DNA of 64,000 nt, taken from sequence record NC_070998.1. The stretch is one strand, 5' to 3'. Positions 1,409 through 57,823 of this stretch are shown here, piece after piece (the stretch's first letter is position 1; every line of letters begins with the position of its first letter). Below the pieces are notes generated by a model. That model was not told the DNA's origin. It ran no database searches and worked only from the letters and a program-made list of their open reading frames with translations. The position numbers and the translations under genes are program-made.

Positions 1409-1443
1409 GACAAAAGTTTCCTTTTATTAATTTTTTACAAGCC

Positions 1444-1477
1444 CTATAATATTTCAGACCGATATTATTAGAATGTA
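1444..1477 (+). promoter_or_regulatory. Putative early (virion-RNAP) promoter
   Basis: CTATAATATTTCAGACCGATATTATTAGAATGTA, one of six ungapped 34-bp copies; core resembles the phiKZ early TATATTAC element. Confidence 0.7.
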
Positions 1478-1498
1478 ATTCTAGGGAGATATTTAAAA

Positions 1499-6704: not shown

Positions 6705-8846
6705 ATGAGAAAGACGTTAGAGGTTTATAAAGCTAGTACCTACGTTAGGCTCACTGGGTATAAACCGGAATTAGTTAAACAGATATTAATGCCTTTTTGT
6801 AAACGTAACTTTGCAAGAGTACAAAAGGTTCCAGGTGATTTATACGGAACACATAAGTGGGAAATCACCCATGTGTTCGCGAGATTCAATAATGATAAAA
6901 CAGAATTAAGGTTCTGTTCATCAATGCTACCTGAACTAATTAAACTCATGACTAGTTCCGGTTATAAAGAGTCACGCATTTCTATTCAAGACGAAAAGGT
7001 AATTAAACCTAAAAAGGTAGTATTACCTTTACTTAATCCAAAGATTAAACCAAGGGATGAAGAACAGGAAGAGTTCTGCGAGTTCATGATGAACGAAGAT
7101 CCTCTTTCTATTAACAACCTTCCGCCGGGGAGGGGTAAAGCACAGCCATTATCATCACTAGTCAAAGTTCCAAATGGCTGGAAAAAGATGGGTGATATCC
7201 GACCGGGTGATAAAGTTACCGCTTGGGATGGTACAACTGTTAATGTTCTTTCTATACATCCACAGGGTGTGAAAGACATTTACGAGTTCACCTTTGCTGA
7301 TGGAAGAACAGCTAAAAGTACCCTAGATCACCTTTGGAAGGTCTTTGATGCTGTATTGGATACTTGGGTGGTGTTAACAACCAAAGAGATCATACAGGGC
7401 GATGTAAAGCGTTTTTCAATACCATTGTTTAAACCTTCAAAAGAAGAATACGAAGATTTAAATAATCAGTTGGAAATGAACTGCTTGGTAATTGATGATA
7501 AAGTTGAAGAACGAACCTTTATGGCGAGTCGTGCCGAATACATTACTGAGTCAGTAAGATCGTTAGGTGGAATTTGTGAGTGTAAATATAGTGATGGATT
7601 TTTCACAGTAACTGGAGACATAAGTCCTGTAGAAAATAAACTCGGTATTGTGTCGGTGTTCAAGATCAGTCAAGAAGAAGCTCAATGTATTTCTATTGAC
7701 CATCCAGATCACTTGTACATCACTGATAACTACGTAGTAACACACAACACGTTCTGCGCCCTATACTCAGCACACCATGTTGGTGAAAGAGTTCTTATCA
7801 CAGTTCTGCCACGGTTCGTTGATATCTGGGTTAAAGCGTTTGGTGAGTTTTACAATATCAAACCTGAAGATGTAGTAGTGGCTGACATCATTGGCGTTCC
7901 TGAACTACATCAAGCTATCGTTAATAACGTGATAGACCCTAAGATCATCATTCTTCCTTTAACTAAGATTGATATTTATCTGAAGAAAATGAGAGATGAT
8001 GAAACTCTACCAAGTCTTGATCAAGTGTTCAATGATCTTGGTTGTGGGATCCGTGTTATTGACGAAGCGCATGAATCGATCTATTCGGTTTATAGTAGTT
8101 TGATGTTTGGTAACCACAAACGCACTTTTGTGTTATCAGGGACATTGAAAGGTGATGATGAATTTGTAAACAAAATTTACAATGCAATCTTTCCCTTTAG
8201 TTGTTACCTGAGATCTCCAGAACACACACCTTACATGCACGTTGTTGCTTATTTCCATCGAATGGATTTATTTAAACATCGTATAAATACAAAAGGTTTT
8301 GGTGGTTATAGCCACGTAAAATTTGAGCAAGGGATATTAAAGAAACCTTGTTTATTTGAAAACTACTACCAAATGCTTTTAGGTGCGTATAAACAGTTTT
8401 ATTTGGACGACTACTTAGAAGGTCAAAAGTCAATGTGGTTTTTTGCCACTACTGAGTTTTGTGATAAGTTCAATGAAAGGTTACTTGTTGACTATCCAGA
8501 GTTAGATTCTATTGTCTTTAACTCTAAGACTAGTAAAAAGGACCCAAATGGATACAGAGAACACACCAATGTCGTAACAACGCCAGGATCTTGCGGTACC
8601 GGAAAAGACATACCCAAGCTCTTTACAGTGTTCTCACCTATAGCTGTGTCTTCTTCCCAGCGTAACAACCAAATGGTCTGTCGCACTAGACCAGTTGATA
8701 AATGGTGGCCAGAACTAATGCCGTACTTTGTTTATTTTGTTTGTCAAGATGAGAAAAAGCAAGTAGAGTACGGTAGAAAGAGAAGGGAACTTTTTAATGG
8801 TGTTTGTAAGAAGTTTTCTATTATCGATAGTGGTGTAAGAATGTAA
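6705..8846 (+). CDS. Superfamily 2 (DExH) helicase with intein (phiKZ gp75-like)
   Basis: Walker A PPGRGK/T split by the intein; VIDEAH Walker B; LSGT motif III; GTGKDIP motif V; QMVCRTRP motif VI. Confidence 0.9.
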   Translation: MRKTLEVYKASTYVRLTGYKPELVKQILMPFCKRNFARVQKVPGDLYGTHKWEITHVFARFNNDKTELRFCSSMLPELIKLMTSSGYKESRISIQDEKVIKPKKVVLPLLNPKIKPRDEEQEEFCEFMMNEDPLSINNLPPGRGKAQPLSSLVKVPNGWKKMGDIRPGDKVTAWDGTTVNVLSIHPQGVKDIYEFTFADGRTAKSTLDHLWKVFDAVLDTWVVLTTKEIIQGDVKRFSIPLFKPSKEEYEDLNNQLEMNCLVIDDKVEERTFMASRAEYITESVRSLGGICECKYSDGFFTVTGDISPVENKLGIVSVFKISQEEAQCISIDHPDHLYITDNYVVTHNTFCALYSAHHVGERVLITVLPRFVDIWVKAFGEFYNIKPEDVVVADIIGVPELHQAIVNNVIDPKIIILPLTKIDIYLKKMRDDETLPSLDQVFNDLGCGIRVIDEAHESIYSVYSSLMFGNHKRTFVLSGTLKGDDEFVNKIYNAIFPFSCYLRSPEHTPYMHVVAYFHRMDLFKHRINTKGFGGYSHVKFEQGILKKPCLFENYYQMLLGAYKQFYLDDYLEGQKSMWFFATTEFCDKFNERLLVDYPELDSIVFNSKTSKKDPNGYREHTNVVTTPGSCGTGKDIPKLFTVFSPIAVSSSQRNNQMVCRTRPVDKWWPELMPYFVYFVCQDEKKQVEYGRKRRELFNGVCKKFSIIDSGVRM
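7140..7748 (+). mobile_element. Class-3 (WCT) mini-intein, 203 aa, in the helicase P-loop
   Basis: Starts AQPLSS (Ala1); block B STLDHLW; block F AQCISID; ends VVTHN followed by +1 Thr; excision restores GRGKT. Confidence 0.92.
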
Positions 8847-8855
8847 ATAAAAACT

Positions 8856-8887
8856 GACTCTACCAAGCTTTGATGCTTGGTAGAGTC
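8856..8887 (+). terminator. Intrinsic terminator
   Basis: GACTCTACCAAGC-TTTGAT-GCTTGGTAGAGTC then TTTATT. Confidence 0.85.
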
Positions 8888-8907
8888 TTTATTAAAGGTT
8901 GAGAGAA

Positions 8908-9402
8908 ATGCAAGCTAATTTTAATACGATTACATTCTCGCTTCCTAATGTGAGAAACGAAGAAGTTTTAAATGCCATTGTAACTGGACTAATGACCATT
9001 ATCGCTAATCAGTTTAACAACGGCGATGAAATGAGCTGTGTTTTCAATAGAGACATTGCTTATTACAGCATGGGAGAAGTCATTACTGATAATGTAATGG
9101 ATGAGCAACAGTTCCAATCTTTACATCAGCAGGCAGTATCTGGACTAGAACATATATTAACACATCAGTTAACTACTCTAGAAATGCTTGTATCAACTTC
9201 TGACGGTCTTTCCGACATAATCCCATATGTTTCCCCTGGTGTTATCTTACTTTACATTAGAGAAGGTTTGGTGAGTAATATCAATGGCACGTATGCAAGT
9301 ATAGAAAGTAACAATCAGGCTTATTTCGAATACTGCCAAATAGTAGGAGATAAGCCAAGTAATAGTTTTCTTACTAATGGTGATTTCAGTGAGATCATTT
9401 AA
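8908..9402 (+). CDS. Hypothetical protein (ATG 8908; alternative TTG 8899)
   Basis: Open frame, purine-rich upstream; first of three packed genes. Confidence 0.7.
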   Translation: MQANFNTITFSLPNVRNEEVLNAIVTGLMTIIANQFNNGDEMSCVFNRDIAYYSMGEVITDNVMDEQQFQSLHQQAVSGLEHILTHQLTTLEMLVSTSDGLSDIIPYVSPGVILLYIREGLVSNINGTYASIESNNQAYFEYCQIVGDKPSNSFLTNGDFSEII

Positions 9403-9781
9403 TCCAGCACCAATTAAAGAAAATAACTTAGAAGTGATAAGTCATCACTTTCTATTACCACGATTATACAAACCAGTGTTTACACCACAAGCTGTTTTAA
9501 ACGAATGGTTGGTATTTTCCCTTGGTTCTTCTATATTAGATTGTCGAGGTTCTTCTTTTTGTTTCATGTCTAGTGCTTTTGATAGTATTCTAGAAACCAT
9601 TGATCCAGGCGATATCGACATAATCAATGAGATTATAGAGGAACTACAAGAGCAACATGAGCTGTTATTTTCTGATCATGTTTTTCAATCAATCTGTTTT
9701 AGTAATTTAGAGTTTTATAAGTTTAGTTATGAGTTGTACTCAACTTCCGGTAGAATCTTATTTCACGTAGATGAAGACTGA
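9377..9781 (+). CDS. Hypothetical acidic protein, 134 aa
   Basis: GTAGGAG upstream; overlaps previous gene. Confidence 0.7.
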   Translation: MVISVRSFNPAPIKENNLEVISHHFLLPRLYKPVFTPQAVLNEWLVFSLGSSILDCRGSSFCFMSSAFDSILETIDPGDIDIINEIIEELQEQHELLFSDHVFQSICFSNLEFYKFSYELYSTSGRILFHVDED

Positions 9782-10376: not shown

Positions 10377-10473
10377 TAATTTACTTTTTCTATTTACTGA
10401 CCAAGGATTTCTTTGTCACAAATACCTTTTACTACCCCAGACGTTTATAGTTAAAGGGATATAAATCCCTACT

Positions 10474-10507
10474 CTATAATTTCTCAGACAGATATAATCC
10501 CAATGCA
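10474..10507 (+). promoter_or_regulatory. Putative early promoter, degenerate copy
   Basis: CTATAATTTCTCAGACAGATATAATCCCAATGCA aligns ungapped with the other copies; 32 nt before the HNH start. Confidence 0.55.
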
Positions 10508-10539
10508 TCACTACCAGGTGTAAACAAAAGGACCATATA

Positions 10540-17486: not shown

Positions 17487-18410
17487 TTATTTGGAGATCA
17501 ACTCACGAACCCCTTCCATTACTTGGTTGATTTTAATAATTTTGGCATCACAATAATTAATTAAACTTGTTAGGTTATTAGATACAGCAACCAATTTCTT
17601 ACATAAAGATTTAACCTTATCAGAATGAAGATTAGACTCTATATCGGAACTATTTTCTTGCCTTTTAGCTAGTTCATTATTGTGTTCAAGATCTTTAGTA
17701 ACTTCGGCCAGGGTCTCGGTAACTATCGCTCTCATCTTACTAAATAATTTTTGTAATTCAACGAGTGGGGGAGTTGCTTCAAAAATGCTAACTCGCTCGT
17801 TATTTTCGTTATAAAAGTATTTAGTTGCATGTTTTTCAGTTATTACGCCAATGCGACTATTTATCTCTTCCAATTGTGCCGCTTTAGATCTTAGATCTGA
17901 TATGGAGATCCCTGGTATTTCCTTTAACCTAGATCCTACAATCCCTGTAGTAAACATATCTTCACTGTATTTGCGTGTAAAGGTCTCGCATTTGTCAGTT
18001 TCTAACTTAATTTTTTCATTATCCATTAATCTTTCAATGCGACTCCTTTCCAATCGATAAGGATCAAAATCCTTATCATTCCGTTTACCCATAATTTCCT
18101 TGCTGACTTTCTCAGTATTTTTTACAGCGTCATCAATCACTTTAGCTTGTTTAGAGCCTTTACTACCAAAGAAGAAATCACGTATTGCTTTAATAAAGTT
18201 TTTAATCATTTCATAAACTTTAGTAGCGCCAGCTTTAACAGAAGACATGAACCCTTCTGTTCCAGATCGGTGTTTAAAATCAACACCGTTGAGTTTAAGA
18301 ACTGTTTTAGCATAAACTGAATCTGGTGATTCTAGATCACCATTAGACAGGGATTCAAAACCATTCAAAGTACTTAATACATGTTCTAAATTATCAATAT
18401 TAACATTCAT
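17487..18410 (-). CDS. Internal-head-protein paralogue of 40000-40893
   Basis: YAKTVLKLNG...GTEGF...IRDFFFGSKGSKQ aligns with YAMTVLKLRG...GCESW...IKEFFFGEGEKQ. Confidence 0.8.
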   Translation of the reverse strand: MNVNIDNLEHVLSTLNGFESLSNGDLESPDSVYAKTVLKLNGVDFKHRSGTEGFMSSVKAGATKVYEMIKNFIKAIRDFFFGSKGSKQAKVIDDAVKNTEKVSKEIMGKRNDKDFDPYRLERSRIERLMDNEKIKLETDKCETFTRKYSEDMFTTGIVGSRLKEIPGISISDLRSKAAQLEEINSRIGVITEKHATKYFYNENNERVSIFEATPPLVELQKLFSKMRAIVTETLAEVTKDLEHNNELAKRQENSSDIESNLHSDKVKSLCKKLVAVSNNLTSLINYCDAKIIKINQVMEGVRELISK

Positions 18411-18442
18411 TTACTTTATTTCCATTTAGTTAAATACAAAAC

Positions 18443-18492
18443 ATTTAAGATCCATAGATTTTTAAACCTATATTACTAGAGTGTATAAACAT
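18443..18492 (+). repeat. 50-bp promoter-containing repeat, copy 1 (49/50 identical to 57236-57285)
   Basis: ATTTAAGATCCATAGATTTTTAAACCTATATTACTAGAGTGTATAAACAT; contains TATATTAC. Confidence 0.95.
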
Positions 18493-18542
18493 AAGAGATT
18501 CTTTAATCTCTTCAACCTTTAAGTATAGAGAAGGAATGTATC

Positions 18543-18971
18543 ATGAATGAACAATATCTGACAGAGAAGCAACTGACTGATGTGTTGATCAACAACGTCG
18601 TGGAAACCCAAACACGGGTACACCAAGGAATCGATCTCAACTTCAATAGTTGGGATGAGATTGTAGAGGTCTCTAAAGAAACAGCCTGCCTTGGTAAGTA
18701 TACCAATCTGGCCGGCGCCCTGGCGGGTGTCGCTGCTTCTGTAGCTATCGAGCTCACTCGTGAAGGCGGTAGCGTCGCTACCGCTAGTGTAGCAGCTGGC
18801 GTTGGGGGTGGATTGATTTTCGCTAACCGCGAGGGCATCATGGGGTTCCAAAATGGTGCCCTTTCCGTGGTTGGTGGGCTCGGTCTGCTGGGTTTGACTC
18901 AAGTAGCAGCCCGTATCGTGGGACCCGTAGCTCCCAATAAAGTTGAAGAAGCGCAAGAGTACGTCGGTTAA
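18543..18971 (+). CDS. Gly/Ala-rich hydrophobic, probably membrane, protein, 142 aa
   Basis: AAGGAAT SD; LAGALAGVAASVA, VAAGVGGGLIF and VVGGLGLLGLT segments; GC-rich codons. Confidence 0.85.
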   Translation: MNEQYLTEKQLTDVLINNVVETQTRVHQGIDLNFNSWDEIVEVSKETACLGKYTNLAGALAGVAASVAIELTREGGSVATASVAAGVGGGLIFANREGIMGFQNGALSVVGGLGLLGLTQVAARIVGPVAPNKVEEAQEYVG

Positions 18972-19017: not shown

Positions 19018-19049
19018 AGTTACCTACTCCCAACTGGGAGTAGGTAACT
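19018..19049 (+). terminator. Intrinsic terminator
   Basis: AGTTACCTACTCCC-AACT-GGGAGTAGGTAACT. Confidence 0.85.
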
Positions 19050-19073
19050 AATACTATTTTATTTTTACTCTTT

Positions 19074-19107
19074 CTATAATTTATTAAACCGATATTATTA
19101 CACTGTA
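19074..19107 (+). promoter_or_regulatory. Putative early promoter
   Basis: CTATAATTTATTAAACCGATATTATTACACTGTA. Confidence 0.7.
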
Positions 19108-19142
19108 GTAAACAATATATGTATTTCAAAGGAGTGTAGAAA

Positions 19143-39999: not shown

Positions 40000-40893
40000 A
40001 TGATTAACGTAACAACACTTAACCCAGAATACGGTGACCAGATTTGTGGGTCGGTCCCCGAGGCGCCTGAATTTCCCGTCACTCTGGTTAATGATCTTGA
40101 TCACGTAGAAGAAGTACTAGATGGTTATTCACAACTTCTTTCTCACGATGAGATGGAACTGGCTAATCTACAGGGCTCTGAATGCTACGCCATGACCGTT
40201 CTTAAGCTTCGTGGGTACGAAGGGTGTGAGTCATGGATGGAAACGCTTAAAAAGAGCGCTGAGGCTGCTTATAAAGCAATCATTGAAACACTACGCAGCA
40301 TTAAAGAGTTCTTCTTTGGCGAAGGCGAGAAGCAGGTTCAAGCTGCTGATGAGAAAGCGCAACAATCTGTAGAAGCCTTAGCGGAACTAGATAAATCTGC
40401 TCCTGTACCGGATGGTAAAGTTAAAGAACCCACTTCTTACTTTAAAGGACTAGGTGAATCAGTGGAACATCAGAAACTACTTGATAAACACCCTAGCATC
40501 AAACAAGTTATTGATAAAATTAACCAATCAGTTTCTAGAGTTGCTAATTCACAAACCGTAGGACAACTTGGAGCTGTTTATCAAGACATCCGTAAGTCAG
40601 CTGCTGGTGCTGCTGAAGAACTTACCAAAAAGCTTAAAGAGAGTATTAGTAAAGCTGAGAAAGCAGCTAATGAAATGAAGTCACCAAAGACCGTAGCTGA
40701 TGATGCTCCGCAGGAAGTTAAAGACGCCGCTAAAGCAGAGCACAAAGAAACTGTTGACGAAGCTAAAGATGAAACTAAACAATCTCGTTTGATCGCAAGT
40801 CTTCGTAATAAAATTGTCACTGTTTTAAATGCTGTCTCTTCTAATGCTAATTCTGTTAAGGTAGAAAAGCCTGAGTCAGAATTCAAAGGTTAA
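40000..40893 (+). CDS. Internal head protein (start ATG 40000), paralogue of 17487-18410
   Basis: GAGGT SD; QGSEC and EGCES motifs; FFFG motif. Confidence 0.78.
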   Translation: MINVTTLNPEYGDQICGSVPEAPEFPVTLVNDLDHVEEVLDGYSQLLSHDEMELANLQGSECYAMTVLKLRGYEGCESWMETLKKSAEAAYKAIIETLRSIKEFFFGEGEKQVQAADEKAQQSVEALAELDKSAPVPDGKVKEPTSYFKGLGESVEHQKLLDKHPSIKQVIDKINQSVSRVANSQTVGQLGAVYQDIRKSAAGAAEELTKKLKESISKAEKAANEMKSPKTVADDAPQEVKDAAKAEHKETVDEAKDETKQSRLIASLRNKIVTVLNAVSSNANSVKVEKPESEFKG

Positions 40894-51743: not shown

Positions 51744-51770
51744 ATTTTTTGTCTTATGTTTTTCTCTGTT

Positions 51771-51804
51771 CTATATTTTTTCAGATAGATATTATTAAGT
51801 TGTA
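51771..51804 (+). promoter_or_regulatory. Putative early promoter
   Basis: CTATATTTTTTCAGATAGATATTATTAAGTTGTA; precedes the operon carrying nvRNAP beta-N. Confidence 0.7.
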
Positions 51805-51851
51805 ATGTCAGGGAGGTTTATTTCTGATGTATTAATAGTAGAGAAAATAAG

Positions 51852-54658: not shown

Positions 54659-57073
54659 ATGAACGGCGGAACACTTCTAGGTCGTAATAACCAGATGTTT
54701 AATAACAATAATGTTAACCAACTGCAAGCGAACCAACAGCAGCAACCCCAAGGTAATATGAACCAAGGTAATCAGTTGCTCGGTCAATTGATCCAGTTGT
54801 CAAAGGGTGGTGCTAATCTTAATCAACAAGGTGGCGGTTCTAGCAGTCTGTACAACTTTAATAATGGTAGTGATCCGTCTTTTAACCAGTTCCTTGATCT
54901 TAGCGATGCTCAAAGTAACGAGATCCTTAAGGGACAATCATTAGCCGAGGCAAGTCAACTTGCTGGGGTGGTTTTGCAACATGGATTTAGACGTATTCAA
55001 GGTCCGTATTACAATGCCATTCGTCAAGGTATGGAATTGTTCCGTCGATTGGATCGTAATGCTCCACATTTGGTTGATGATACTAGTGAGCTGTTTTATA
55101 ACCAGATCATGAGTAACAACAACTTGTACAATCATATTGTTGCTAATAGCTGTTTGCAGCTTTCTGCTCTTGCTGCTATGCGACTAATGAATGGTGAGAA
55201 CATTCGTGGGAACGCCAATGTGATTACCGAGATGATTGTGGATGCTGTTGGCGCAACCTGTGGTCTACAGTTACTGGATTGGATTTGTAAGAACCCTAAT
55301 GGTTCTACTATCTTCCATAACTCCAGTCAGAACTTTAAAGCCCTCCTTCGTCGTATAGAGAGCTGCTGGGATAGTATCAAAGCTCGATACGATTTCATCC
55401 CTGGTTCTGTAATCCCCTGGGAGCGTGGACAGTTGACAGCTACGATGCGTAAAAGTGATCTCCCTAATTACATGTTGGATGCAAGGATGGGGGTAAACTT
55501 TGAAGGTTTGATCGGTAACAGTTATCAAGCTGTACAAGATCTCACGCCTTCTCATCATACTGTTCAAGATCATAATCAGGGTATTGATCCAGCTGGTTAT
55601 CAATTGATGATGGATTACTTCAATCGTACCAAGTGTTCAGTTGAAGACGGGACGTACCCAACAGCTCCTAGTAAGGAAGAACGAGTTCAGCGACGTCAAG
55701 ATTATCATAACGTTAATGATTTTGACCGCGAAGTTAAATCCACTAAGTACTTTACTATGGATACTCGTTTTGATTACCACTTTGACGACTATTTCGTTCA
55801 GATTGGTGATACTGGCTGGTACGCTGCTGAGAACCAGGTCATGATTGATATCATGTCTAAGTTCACCAACGTTAACACTGGTAAGAAATTTGTTAAATCT
55901 GAAGTGTTCTATCTTAACCTTGAATGGGTTTCACTGTGCCGTTTTGATGTAGCTAACGGAACTGCCGAAATCAAATTCTTACGTATCCCAGGAGAAGATG
56001 CATTGAGATTCGCTCTTACAGACCCGAATCGTGTTCTTCCATTTATGTGGGAACACAATGGAGAAGTTGTTTCCTCGTTTGTTGCTAATCCGGCAGAAAC
56101 CAATGACTTTGTTCGTGATAATAAAGTTATTAGTCTGGGTGAAATGCAACCTCTGGAGAAAGAACCGAACATCCTGTCTTCCAGCAATGTAGTTAAAGTA
56201 AACTCTGAAAGTGAAGCGTTTGCTAAAGTAGATGCTTCTCTGAAGACGTTTGATAAACAAAATCATCTTGATGCGTTCATTATGGCAACTGAACTAAACG
56301 CACCTTTCACATTTGAAGAAGGAGTTGAATCAAAGAAATTCTACGAAATATTTAACACTTTGGTTATTGGAGAGGAATTGGATTACTCTAATAGCTATGA
56401 CATGTTCAAGTCTCTGGAACGTAAAGTTAAACAGTTTGGTTCTGCTATGTTTGAACATTTCCTACGTACTCAACTTACCAACTTGGTTAACCGTTGGTTG
56501 AGTGAATGTCGTGGGTTCCCAGCAGAGAACGATGGCGTTAACTTCTTTGTTAAACTTGATGATCTGTTTGATGATCTAGATGCCTTCTGTGAACTGTTGA
56601 AGAATAAGGATCATGAGTCACTCCGTGCTTTCCTTAATCTAGCCGATAATGAATTCCTGAAGAGTAATTTGCAATTTATCAAACCAGCAAAGGAAACTGA
56701 AGAAGAACTGTTTAAGAATGTAGATAAAGATGATCCGGTAGCAGTAGCCGTAGCTACTAATGAGTTTGCTCAGTCGGTCGTACTCAAACGTCAAGTTATG
56801 ATTACTCAACTGAGAAAAGAAATTGGTCCCGTAAGTAACGATAAAGTAACTTTGATGGAATCACTTTCACCAGCAGTATTTGTCATTGTGAAAGAAGCAC
56901 GTAAACGTTCAGAGTTGTTGTTTGGACGTCAAGTTCCTGTGTTACTGGAATTTGAAACTCCAAGTGGTAATCATACACGTTCTGCTACGTACTGTGATTT
57001 TGATCAATCTGTTATGAACATCTCAGCACTGAAAGGTCTGGGTGAACTTATCTTACTTCGTACTGTAGATTAA
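54659..57073 (+). CDS. Large conserved protein, 804 aa, with Q/N/G-rich N-terminus
   Basis: AAGGTGG SD; co-oriented directly after nvRNAP beta-N. Confidence 0.85.
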   Translation: MNGGTLLGRNNQMFNNNNVNQLQANQQQQPQGNMNQGNQLLGQLIQLSKGGANLNQQGGGSSSLYNFNNGSDPSFNQFLDLSDAQSNEILKGQSLAEASQLAGVVLQHGFRRIQGPYYNAIRQGMELFRRLDRNAPHLVDDTSELFYNQIMSNNNLYNHIVANSCLQLSALAAMRLMNGENIRGNANVITEMIVDAVGATCGLQLLDWICKNPNGSTIFHNSSQNFKALLRRIESCWDSIKARYDFIPGSVIPWERGQLTATMRKSDLPNYMLDARMGVNFEGLIGNSYQAVQDLTPSHHTVQDHNQGIDPAGYQLMMDYFNRTKCSVEDGTYPTAPSKEERVQRRQDYHNVNDFDREVKSTKYFTMDTRFDYHFDDYFVQIGDTGWYAAENQVMIDIMSKFTNVNTGKKFVKSEVFYLNLEWVSLCRFDVANGTAEIKFLRIPGEDALRFALTDPNRVLPFMWEHNGEVVSSFVANPAETNDFVRDNKVISLGEMQPLEKEPNILSSSNVVKVNSESEAFAKVDASLKTFDKQNHLDAFIMATELNAPFTFEEGVESKKFYEIFNTLVIGEELDYSNSYDMFKSLERKVKQFGSAMFEHFLRTQLTNLVNRWLSECRGFPAENDGVNFFVKLDDLFDDLDAFCELLKNKDHESLRAFLNLADNEFLKSNLQFIKPAKETEEELFKNVDKDDPVAVAVATNEFAQSVVLKRQVMITQLRKEIGPVSNDKVTLMESLSPAVFVIVKEARKRSELLFGRQVPVLLEFETPSGNHTRSATYCDFDQSVMNISALKGLGELILLRTVD

Positions 57074-57099: not shown

Positions 57100-57127
57100 C
57101 CTATACCTGGATCACTCCAGGTATAGG
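57100..57127 (+). terminator. Intrinsic terminator
   Basis: CCTATACCTGGA-TCAC-TCCAGGTATAGG then TCTATTT. Confidence 0.8.
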
Positions 57128-57235
57128 TCTATTTCGTCGTGTAATTCTTTTTAAGCAATTGTTTATGTTGATCTAACAGAATGTATGGGTTACTTGTTAC
57201 TGTTGTTTAGAAAGCGTTATATAAGCTTTGGTAAT

Positions 57236-57285
57236 ATTTAAGATCCATAGATTTTCAAACCTATATTACTAGAGTGTATAAACAT
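57236..57285 (+). repeat. 50-bp promoter-containing repeat, copy 2
   Basis: ATTTAAGATCCATAGATTTTCAAACCTATATTACTAGAGTGTATAAACAT; one mismatch to 18443-18492. Confidence 0.95.
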
Positions 57286-57341
57286 GACAAGTGTTTATAA
57301 TATTCACATATTTTCCACAAGTCTAGATAAGGAATACAATC

Positions 57342-57785
57342 ATGAACAACTCCGCTCTGAACCTGAACTCTGACATGAACCAACCAGCACCTAGTGTTTC
57401 CACTGACACCTCCAATCTCAGTCCGAACAAATGGATCGTTGCCGGCGTAGCTATCTCTGCTGCTCTGGCTGTTAACCTGACCGACCAAGTTAAAGAAGAT
57501 CGTTTCGATCTGATCAGCAATGTCGCGACCATGACCGCTGCAACCTTGGCCGGTGGTGTGTCCTACAAAGTAGCTAGTGACGTTGAAGGGGTACCTACTT
57601 CACTGTGCAGCGTCCTGGGTGGGTCTATCGGCGTCCTGTCTGCGGCAGTTGTCAACCCTACCGTAATGGCCCTGGGAAACAAGGTCAAGAACGGGTTTGG
57701 TAGCAAAGCAGAGGAACAGTTCGATATCGTGATCGTTGATAACGAGACTCTGGAAGAACACCTGGAACAGAAAGAAACCGCATAA
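57342..57785 (+). CDS. Ala/Gly/Val-rich hydrophobic, probably membrane, protein, 147 aa
   Basis: AAGGAAT SD; WIVAGVAISAALAV, TAATLAGGV and SVLGGSIGVLSAAVV segments; GC-rich codons. Confidence 0.85.
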   Translation: MNNSALNLNSDMNQPAPSVSTDTSNLSPNKWIVAGVAISAALAVNLTDQVKEDRFDLISNVATMTAATLAGGVSYKVASDVEGVPTSLCSVLGGSIGVLSAAVVNPTVMALGNKVKNGFGSKAEEQFDIVIVDNETLEEHLEQKETA

Positions 57786-57791
57786 TAAGTA

Positions 57792-57823
57792 TTCCTACCT
57801 ACCCTTTATTGGGTAGGTAGGAA
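57792..57823. terminator. Bidirectional terminator
   Basis: TTCCTACCTACCC-TTTATT-GGGTAGGTAGGAA. Confidence 0.85.

Follow-up and report, generated by a model that had tools for sequence, protein, structure and literature searches.

The segment at 57233-57823 of the DNA analysed here is best read as a monocistronic early transcription unit of Aeromonas phage PS1. Its gene, gp143, probably encodes an abundant early, membrane-embedded accessory protein acting at the phage-host interface, as judged from protein architecture, promoter class, codon bias, evolutionary rate and distribution. A sequence-only reading had described the unit as cassette 2 of a twin system, with the unit of gp177 as cassette 1. 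This twin system resolves into a promoter class of 33 members, a genome-wide family of terminators and a four-member family of orphan proteins. The repeat shared by the cassettes needs no special explanation, the unit being an ordinary phage expression unit.

Genome setting and layout of the unit

The window, the 64,000-nt stretch of DNA that was analysed, corresponds to positions 62001-126000 of NC_070998.1 (Aeromonas phage PS1, 237,367 bp); over 7 kb around the unit its identity to PS1 is 100%. PS1 belongs to the genus Ferozepurvirus, which has been assigned to the Chimalliviridae (PMC12837969). It is a phiKZ-like, nucleus-forming jumbo phage with genes for a nuclear shell protein, for PhuZ tubulin and for several subunits of split RNA polymerases.

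The gp143 unit lies between the terminator hairpin of gp144 and a terminator hairpin of its own (Table 1). With a promoter, a hairpin leader, a ribosome site, one ORF and a terminator, it is the self-contained cassette that had been described. The 53-nt repeat block holds the promoter core and, at 57237-57247, an upstream element TTTAAGATCCA; it also takes in the first bases predicted to be transcribed. The block was indeed found to be nearly identical to that of cassette 1, matching it at 51 of 53 bases; the 61-mer around it occurred once, against no occurrence expected from shuffles. In the neighbouring gp144 (804 aa, 54659-57073) the N-terminal 90 or so residues form a low-complexity region rich in Asn and Gln; the sole match of gp144 was a PHROG of unknown function.

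Table 1. Features of the gp143 unit, of cassette 1 and of related loci; positions are those of the window, except in the last four rows, where they are those of the locus named.
Feature	Position	Strand	Remarks
gp144 terminator hairpin	57100-57127	.	Left edge of the gp143 unit; 12-bp perfect stem, 4-nt loop
53-nt repeat block, gp143 (cassette 2)	57233-57285	+	Partner block at 18440-18492
gp143 promoter core, 37 nt	57243-57279	+	Upstream variant 1; position matrix, 46.4 bits; one of the 33 genome-wide copies
AT-rich element TATATTACTA in the gp143 core	57262-57271	+	
5'-terminal hairpin of the predicted gp143 mRNA	57277-57299	+	Perfect 8-bp stem, 7-nt loop
gp143 ribosome-site block AAGTCTAGATAAGGAAT plus start context ..TCATGAA	57319-57346	+	
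gp143	57342-57785	+	Hypothetical protein YP_010674786.1, 147 aa
gp143 terminator hairpin	57792-57823	.	13-bp perfect stem, 6-nt loop
Promoter block of gp177 (cassette 1)	18440-18492	+	Core 18450-18486, upstream variant 1; partner of the 53-nt repeat
Cassette 1 leader hairpin AAGAGATT / CTTT / AATCTCTT	18493-18512	+	8-bp stem, 4-nt loop
gp177	18543-18971	+	142 aa; probable remote homolog of gp143
gp177 terminator hairpin	19018-19049	.	14-bp stem; next promoter copy immediately after
Promoter copy before gp194 and RNA-polymerase subunit gp193	1442-1478	+	Upstream variant 2
Promoter copy before HNH endonuclease gp185	10472-10508	+	Weaker score
Promoter copy before gp176-gp174	19072-19108	+	Upstream variant 2, TTCTATAAT-type element
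Promoter copy before gp146 and polymerase subunit gp145	51769-51805	+	Upstream variant 2
Extra gene between gp143 and gp142 orthologs, L002	4825-5772	-	
Extra gene between gp143 and gp142 orthologs, L011	1694-2647	-	
Extra gene between gp143 and gp142 orthologs, L020	1990-2943	-	
Extra gene between gp143 and gp142 orthologs, L018	752-1705	-	

A promoter family of 33 copies

A position matrix was seeded with the five copies in the window and iterated over six pieces of the PS1 record. The scan returned 33 copies, not two as the word twin implies, all of them on the plus strand and immediately before annotated starts, the core ending about 20-90 nt short of the start codon. They precede the shell gene gp215, the polymerase operons gp194/gp193 and gp146/gp145, gp074 and gp065, as well as four HNH endonuclease genes, a phosphoesterase gene and the gene of a Clp-like protease. 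HNH endonuclease genes with a promoter copy of their own are located at L004 42319, at L006 (record position 128123) and behind the copy at 10472 in the window. With a general promoter in front of such different genes, the proposal that unrelated genes had captured or homogenised one promoter is not supported.

The AT-rich element of the core is invariant or nearly so in the 33 copies. In the gp143 promoter a T-rich run (57253-57256) lies upstream of it and a conserved TGTA downstream, and the promoter is conserved at 12 orthologous gp143 loci.

For phiKZ, 32 sites are known of an early promoter described as a −10-like element in extended form, with a T-rich motif lying upstream of −19 (PMC8244752). 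According to a review, jumbo phages that encode their own polymerases all have such a motif, with its centre near −10 of the early genes (PMC7598289). Both sequence features by which a phiKZ-type early promoter was recognised were found in PS1, namely the AT-rich/T-rich layout, with positions relative to a predicted start, and many copies before presumed early operons (shell, non-virion polymerase subunits, nucleotide metabolism). Like the early promoters of phiKZ, those of PS1 number about 30, lie mainly on one strand before early operons that include shell and polymerase genes, carry a highly conserved AT-rich element some 10 nt ahead of the start (a predicted one in PS1) with a T-rich run upstream, and can be found by a simple motif search. 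Unlike them, they have a genus-specific sequence and two upstream variants, and their start sites are predicted where those of phiKZ are mapped.

Since the layout of the 33 copies matches both the phiKZ early promoter and the rule for jumbo phages, the repeated block is taken to be the early promoter of PS1. It would be read by the virion RNA polymerase injected with the phage, and transcription of gp143 would start at about 57275-57279. For this phage genus the analysis yields a usable map of the terminators and of 33 probable early promoters. A sigma-70 promoter was also considered for the block and rejected, a simple scan giving only 9-of-12 matches and the conserved positions falling off the −35/−10 layout.

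Two upstream variants were distinguished. Eleven copies carry an element of the TTTAAGATCCA kind, altered in two of them, and the remaining 22 an element of the TTCTATAAT kind (19072-19080). Of the genes standing first behind the promoter, 7 of 11 with variant 1 and 1 of 22 with variant 2 encode a signal or membrane segment (Fisher p = 0.0005, for promoter classes that were defined after looking at the data).

Over a 92-nt register, pairs of promoters share a median of 45 positions. The promoters of gp143 and gp177 share 63, in agreement with the view that the two cassettes belong together more closely than most copies. This closeness is not unique, because gp006-gp143, gp006-gp177 and gp006-gp023 also reach 63 and the HNH genes gp217 and gp134, the most similar promoter pair in the genome, reach 68 with the leader included. 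The promoters of gp099, gp006 and gp023 match those of gp143 and gp177 at 60-63 of the 92 positions. Only one promoter position shows a state shared within a genome (G in both copies of PS1, T in both of AVP1), so gene conversion cannot be argued. The retention of repeats that could recombine and excise the DNA between them had been put forward as a sign of selection; it carries no particular weight here, since direct copies number 33 and occur throughout a genome in which essential genes abound.

Leader, ribosome site and terminator

The gp143 mRNA would begin with the hairpin TATAAACA / TGACAAG / TGTTTATA (−6.7 kcal/mol, z −2.2), lying one base to the left of where a casual count places it. 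It differs from the leader hairpin of cassette 1, as had been noticed. A subset of units, including those of the shell gene and of the four paralogs treated below, have a stable hairpin within 45 nt of the start of the predicted leader. At the 12 orthologous loci the gp143 leader hairpin was retained with minor changes. The most distant relative (L012) has a different 8-bp hairpin at the same leader position, and both arms of its terminator are altered with their pairing preserved; the exchanged hairpin and the co-varying arms support a structural role.

Stem-loops at the 5' end stabilise bacterial and phage mRNAs, as in the ompA leader, and the leader hairpin of gp143 plausibly does the same. 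Like ompA-type leaders, that of PS1 has a stable hairpin within a few bases of its predicted 5' end, and as with mRNA-stabilising stem-loops the leader hairpins of PS1 are found in the genes of strongest codon bias. Unlike in the ompA type, the stabilising role is a presumed one, and the PS1 hairpin could act on initiation or translation instead.

Translation of gp143 would proceed from a strong ribosome-site block, in which AAGGAAT (57329-57335) is followed by four bases and TCATGAA (57340-57346). The AAGGAAT-N4-TCATGAA context ascribed to both cassettes was found as described in that of gp143; in cassette 1, AAGGAAT (18531-18537) is separated from TCATGAA by three bases, GTA. With few changes the block is common to gp143, gp177, gp006 and gp205, and partly to gp061. 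These five genes form a tight sub-family with a common promoter variant, hairpin leader layout and ribosome-site block; the shell gene matches the leader layout and the ribosome-site block only loosely. The idea that one gene class stands behind the copies of the repeat thus holds within the sub-family and fails across the 33 copies.

The gp143 transcript would end at the hairpin between the convergent genes gp143 (plus strand) and gp142 (minus strand), the stem of which is 54% G+C. About 60 hairpins with perfect stems of at least 12 bp were found in the genome, mostly intergenic and many with C/T-rich left arms of the CTAC type, and the one after gp143, already noticed as a family hairpin, is among them. 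An intrinsic terminator combines a G+C-containing stem-loop with a run of T right behind it. Here the stem-loop is present, but on the plus strand no T-run was seen within 2 nt of its stem, and a simple scan lists the hairpin on the minus strand only. An Rfam scan of the gp143 locus gave no match. In two relatives (L022 1950-2155; L023 736-927) the gp143 ortholog has no terminator hairpin after it, and a small plus-strand ORF with its own ribosome site stands 3' of it instead.

The gp143 protein and its relatives

The gp143 protein was described accurately from the sequence as 147 residues with three Ala/Gly/Val segments and an acidic tail, with a G+C content of 37/60 at 57601-57660. It has a polar, conserved N-terminus, three stretches rich in Ala, Gly, Val and Ser (residues about 29-47, 57-75 and 86-112) and the acidic tail. 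It would thus be a small acidic protein with three mildly hydrophobic helices rich in small residues.

As had been observed, gp143 and gp177 share this architecture with little evident identity, and no significant pairwise similarity was found (BLASTP E = 1.6). Each has a closer relative elsewhere in the phage. The C-terminal half of gp006 matches gp143 with an E-value of 1.5e-15 and 57% identity over the first 60 residues, and gp061, encoded outside the window, is 38% identical to gp177 (E 1e-20). Matches across the two pairs are the next best in the phage (E 0.05-0.3).

Alignment of the gp143/gp006 and gp177/gp061 profiles with hhalign gave a score of 31.3 (probability 50%, E 1.6e-4), against 11.9 ± 2.5 for 40 column shuffles (maximum 18.4) and 15.2 for the reversed profile. 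The alignment is collinear over the first two helices, beginning just ahead of the first, and in both families Val-Ser and then Leu precede the first hydrophobic helix (V19, S20 and L26 in gp143; V43, S44 and L50 in gp177). Remote homology of the two families is probable but unproven. The AlphaFold2 models of both families were all-helical and of low confidence (pLDDT 46 and 49), too unreliable to confirm the link. On their sequences, gp143, the C-terminal half of gp006, gp177 and gp061 are regarded as four diverged paralogs confined to Ferozepurvirus-like phages. In gp006 (L004/record 8825-9778) a polar domain of about 170 residues, of no known family, precedes an internal Met and a complete gp143-like module, so that gp006 looks like a fusion; its promoter variant and leader are as in gp143.

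The sequence-only reading had taken gp143 and gp177 for unrelated membrane genes, either acquiring or homogenising one promoter, and possibly for partners in one hetero-oligomeric complex. Nearly identical blocks before such dissimilar proteins, the single promoter position with a shared state in PS1 and AVP1, and the co-expression that a common promoter variant makes plausible all speak for such a pair. It is nevertheless very unlikely, as the same core occurs in 33 copies, three other promoters are about as similar to those of the pair, the single shared site is not evidence of gene conversion, and the two ORFs score as remote homologs that each have a closer paralog elsewhere (gp006 for gp143, gp061 for gp177).

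Whether the proteins reside in the membrane was judged from their physical character. The three segments have a mean hydrophobicity of 0.43-0.61 over 21 residues, helical moments of 0.04-0.23 and summed apparent insertion energies of +2 to +8 kcal/mol, the hydrophobicity and energy scales being rough guides. The distribution of Lys and Arg in gp143 favours an N-out, C-in arrangement; an N-out topology fits poorly, because the module in gp006 follows the polar domain. In the gp177/gp061 family an invariant Glu lies within the first hydrophobic segment.

The proteins might accordingly be soluble, abundant early in infection, rich in Ala and Gly and helical or in part disordered, and serve as scaffold, filler or binding partner in the cytoplasm or at the phage nucleus; we regard this as unlikely, though a serious contender. 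It would account for insertion energies that are positive for every segment, a mean hydrophobicity below the classical threshold for single membrane helices, conserved charged residues within or beside the segments, net charges of −9 and −7, the low confidence of the modelled helices, and a gp006 module placed behind a polar domain that has no signal sequence. Soluble helical bundles are normally amphipathic, however, and these helices are not; moreover, the tight sub-family includes gp205, a 47-aa one-helix protein that is clearly a single-pass membrane protein (mean H 0.77), and proteins with membrane or signal segments are over-represented behind the promoter variant. Because the segments are uniformly and mildly hydrophobic and not amphipathic, they fit the helices of a membrane oligomer better than those of a soluble bundle, which is not decisive. 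The regulatory reading is the same for a soluble protein.

For a membrane-embedded accessory protein, known phage proteins offer a comparison. Small early membrane proteins of lytic phages, such as Imm and Sp of T4, block superinfection. Like these, gp143 is small, presumably early and fast-evolving and has hydrophobic helices. It differs from them in that no search found sequence similarity, and in its four paralogs, marginal hydrophobicity and very high predicted expression. The gp143 family may supply reasonable candidates for proteins with which nucleus-forming phages deal with membranes during the first minutes of infection. A more far-reaching proposal, which we hold to be distinctly unlikely, is that the four paralogs and gp205 are genus-specific, very abundant early membrane proteins that reshape the inner membrane of the host or the vesicle of early infection, or pass the genome to the nascent nucleus, the variant promoter being largely reserved for envelope-directed proteins.

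A holin-like lysis protein of class I was weighed as well. With its three hydrophobic helices and charged C-terminal tail gp143 resembles class I holins, as it does in size (about 100-150 aa), and weak matches were seen to a PHROG holin family (E = 0.21) and to a Helicobacter phage holin (E = 0.5). Both matches are at chance level, and gp143 stands behind an early promoter, has the codon bias of the top-expressed genes, is one of four paralogs and has no lysis enzyme next to it, the transglycosylase gp123 being about 24 kb away and outside the window. Class I holins have three TM helices and a charged C-terminus, are expressed late and are linked to a lysis enzyme; of these marks the architecture alone is compatible with gp143, and a holin is highly improbable.

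Homologs outside this phage clade were absent from the databases searched. Word-based searches of 5.8 billion proteins returned only Ferozepurvirus relatives and matching metagenome contigs, tblastn against 50,697 phage records returned seven Ferozepurvirus records only, and a profile search run exhaustively over 1.84 billion representative proteins yielded, apart from the family and the gp006 type, a single repeat protein. The latter (P0107) was rejected as spurious, its score being the sum of 15 weak repeats. Four loci were found in a metagenome scan, all within the Ferozepurvirus-like clade, and a scan of IMG/VR found no relatives. Nothing above threshold was found in Pfam, PHROGs or NCBIfam for gp143, gp177, gp061 and gp006, including any glycine-zipper or curated small-membrane-protein family, and searches of PDB sequences with both family profiles gave chance matches only (subtilisin, short-chain reductases; E ≥ 0.1). 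A gp061-type protein labelled 'MAG: Shewanella sp.' (P0130) is encoded on a contig of 236,107 bp, a length that matches these phage genomes; the contig probably represents a phage that was wrongly placed in a bacterial bin.

The gp143 ORF has a G+C content of 51%, against 39% for the window, which could point to recent acquisition from a G+C-rich host, the gene having landed behind a phage promoter. Such an origin is scarcely credible, given that the word-based and profile searches led back to this phage family alone and that gp143 equals the capsid and shell genes in GC3. Among 238 non-overlapping ORFs the shell gene ranks second in GC3 (0.57), gp143 third (0.56), the major capsid gene fourth (0.51), gp177 sixth (0.49), gp061 17th and gp006 28th, the median being 0.35. 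As the capsid and shell genes match gp143, the bias tracks genes expected to be highly expressed and not foreign origin, and from its codon usage gp143 is probably very highly expressed. The highest GC3 in the phage (0.63) belongs to an unannotated ORF of 60 codons (L006, record 163212-163391), perhaps a missed small gene or a chance ORF.

Compared with phage pAEv1810, gp143 has a dN of 0.18 and a dN/dS of 0.35, and gp177 a dN of 0.20. For gp144 and gp142, which flank gp143, dN is 0.012-0.013 and dN/dS 0.04, gp143 thus evolving about 15 times faster. Change is concentrated in its C-terminal half, and the N-terminal 65 residues are nearly fixed. Codon bias equal to that of the shell and capsid genes together with fast evolution is the profile expected of abundant early proteins that act on the host.

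In PS1 and PS2 the first 35 or so residues of gp177 (18543-18650) are unrelated to those of the orthologs in AVP1, ACP1 and pAEv1810, and beyond the N-terminus the protein is about 90% identical to them; the N-terminus looks like a replacement. Between the gp143 and gp142 orthologs of pAEv1810, AVP1 and the metagenome relatives L018 and L020 an extra minus-strand gene of about 0.95 kb is located (Table 1), which PS1 lacks at the equivalent point between 57823 and 57844. AVP1 has no gp178-like gene beside its gp177 ortholog. The extra gene is a 53%-identical paralog of gp178 (17487-18410), which adjoins cassette 1 in PS1, and further paralogs of it in PS1 are gp053 and gp156 (40000-40893).
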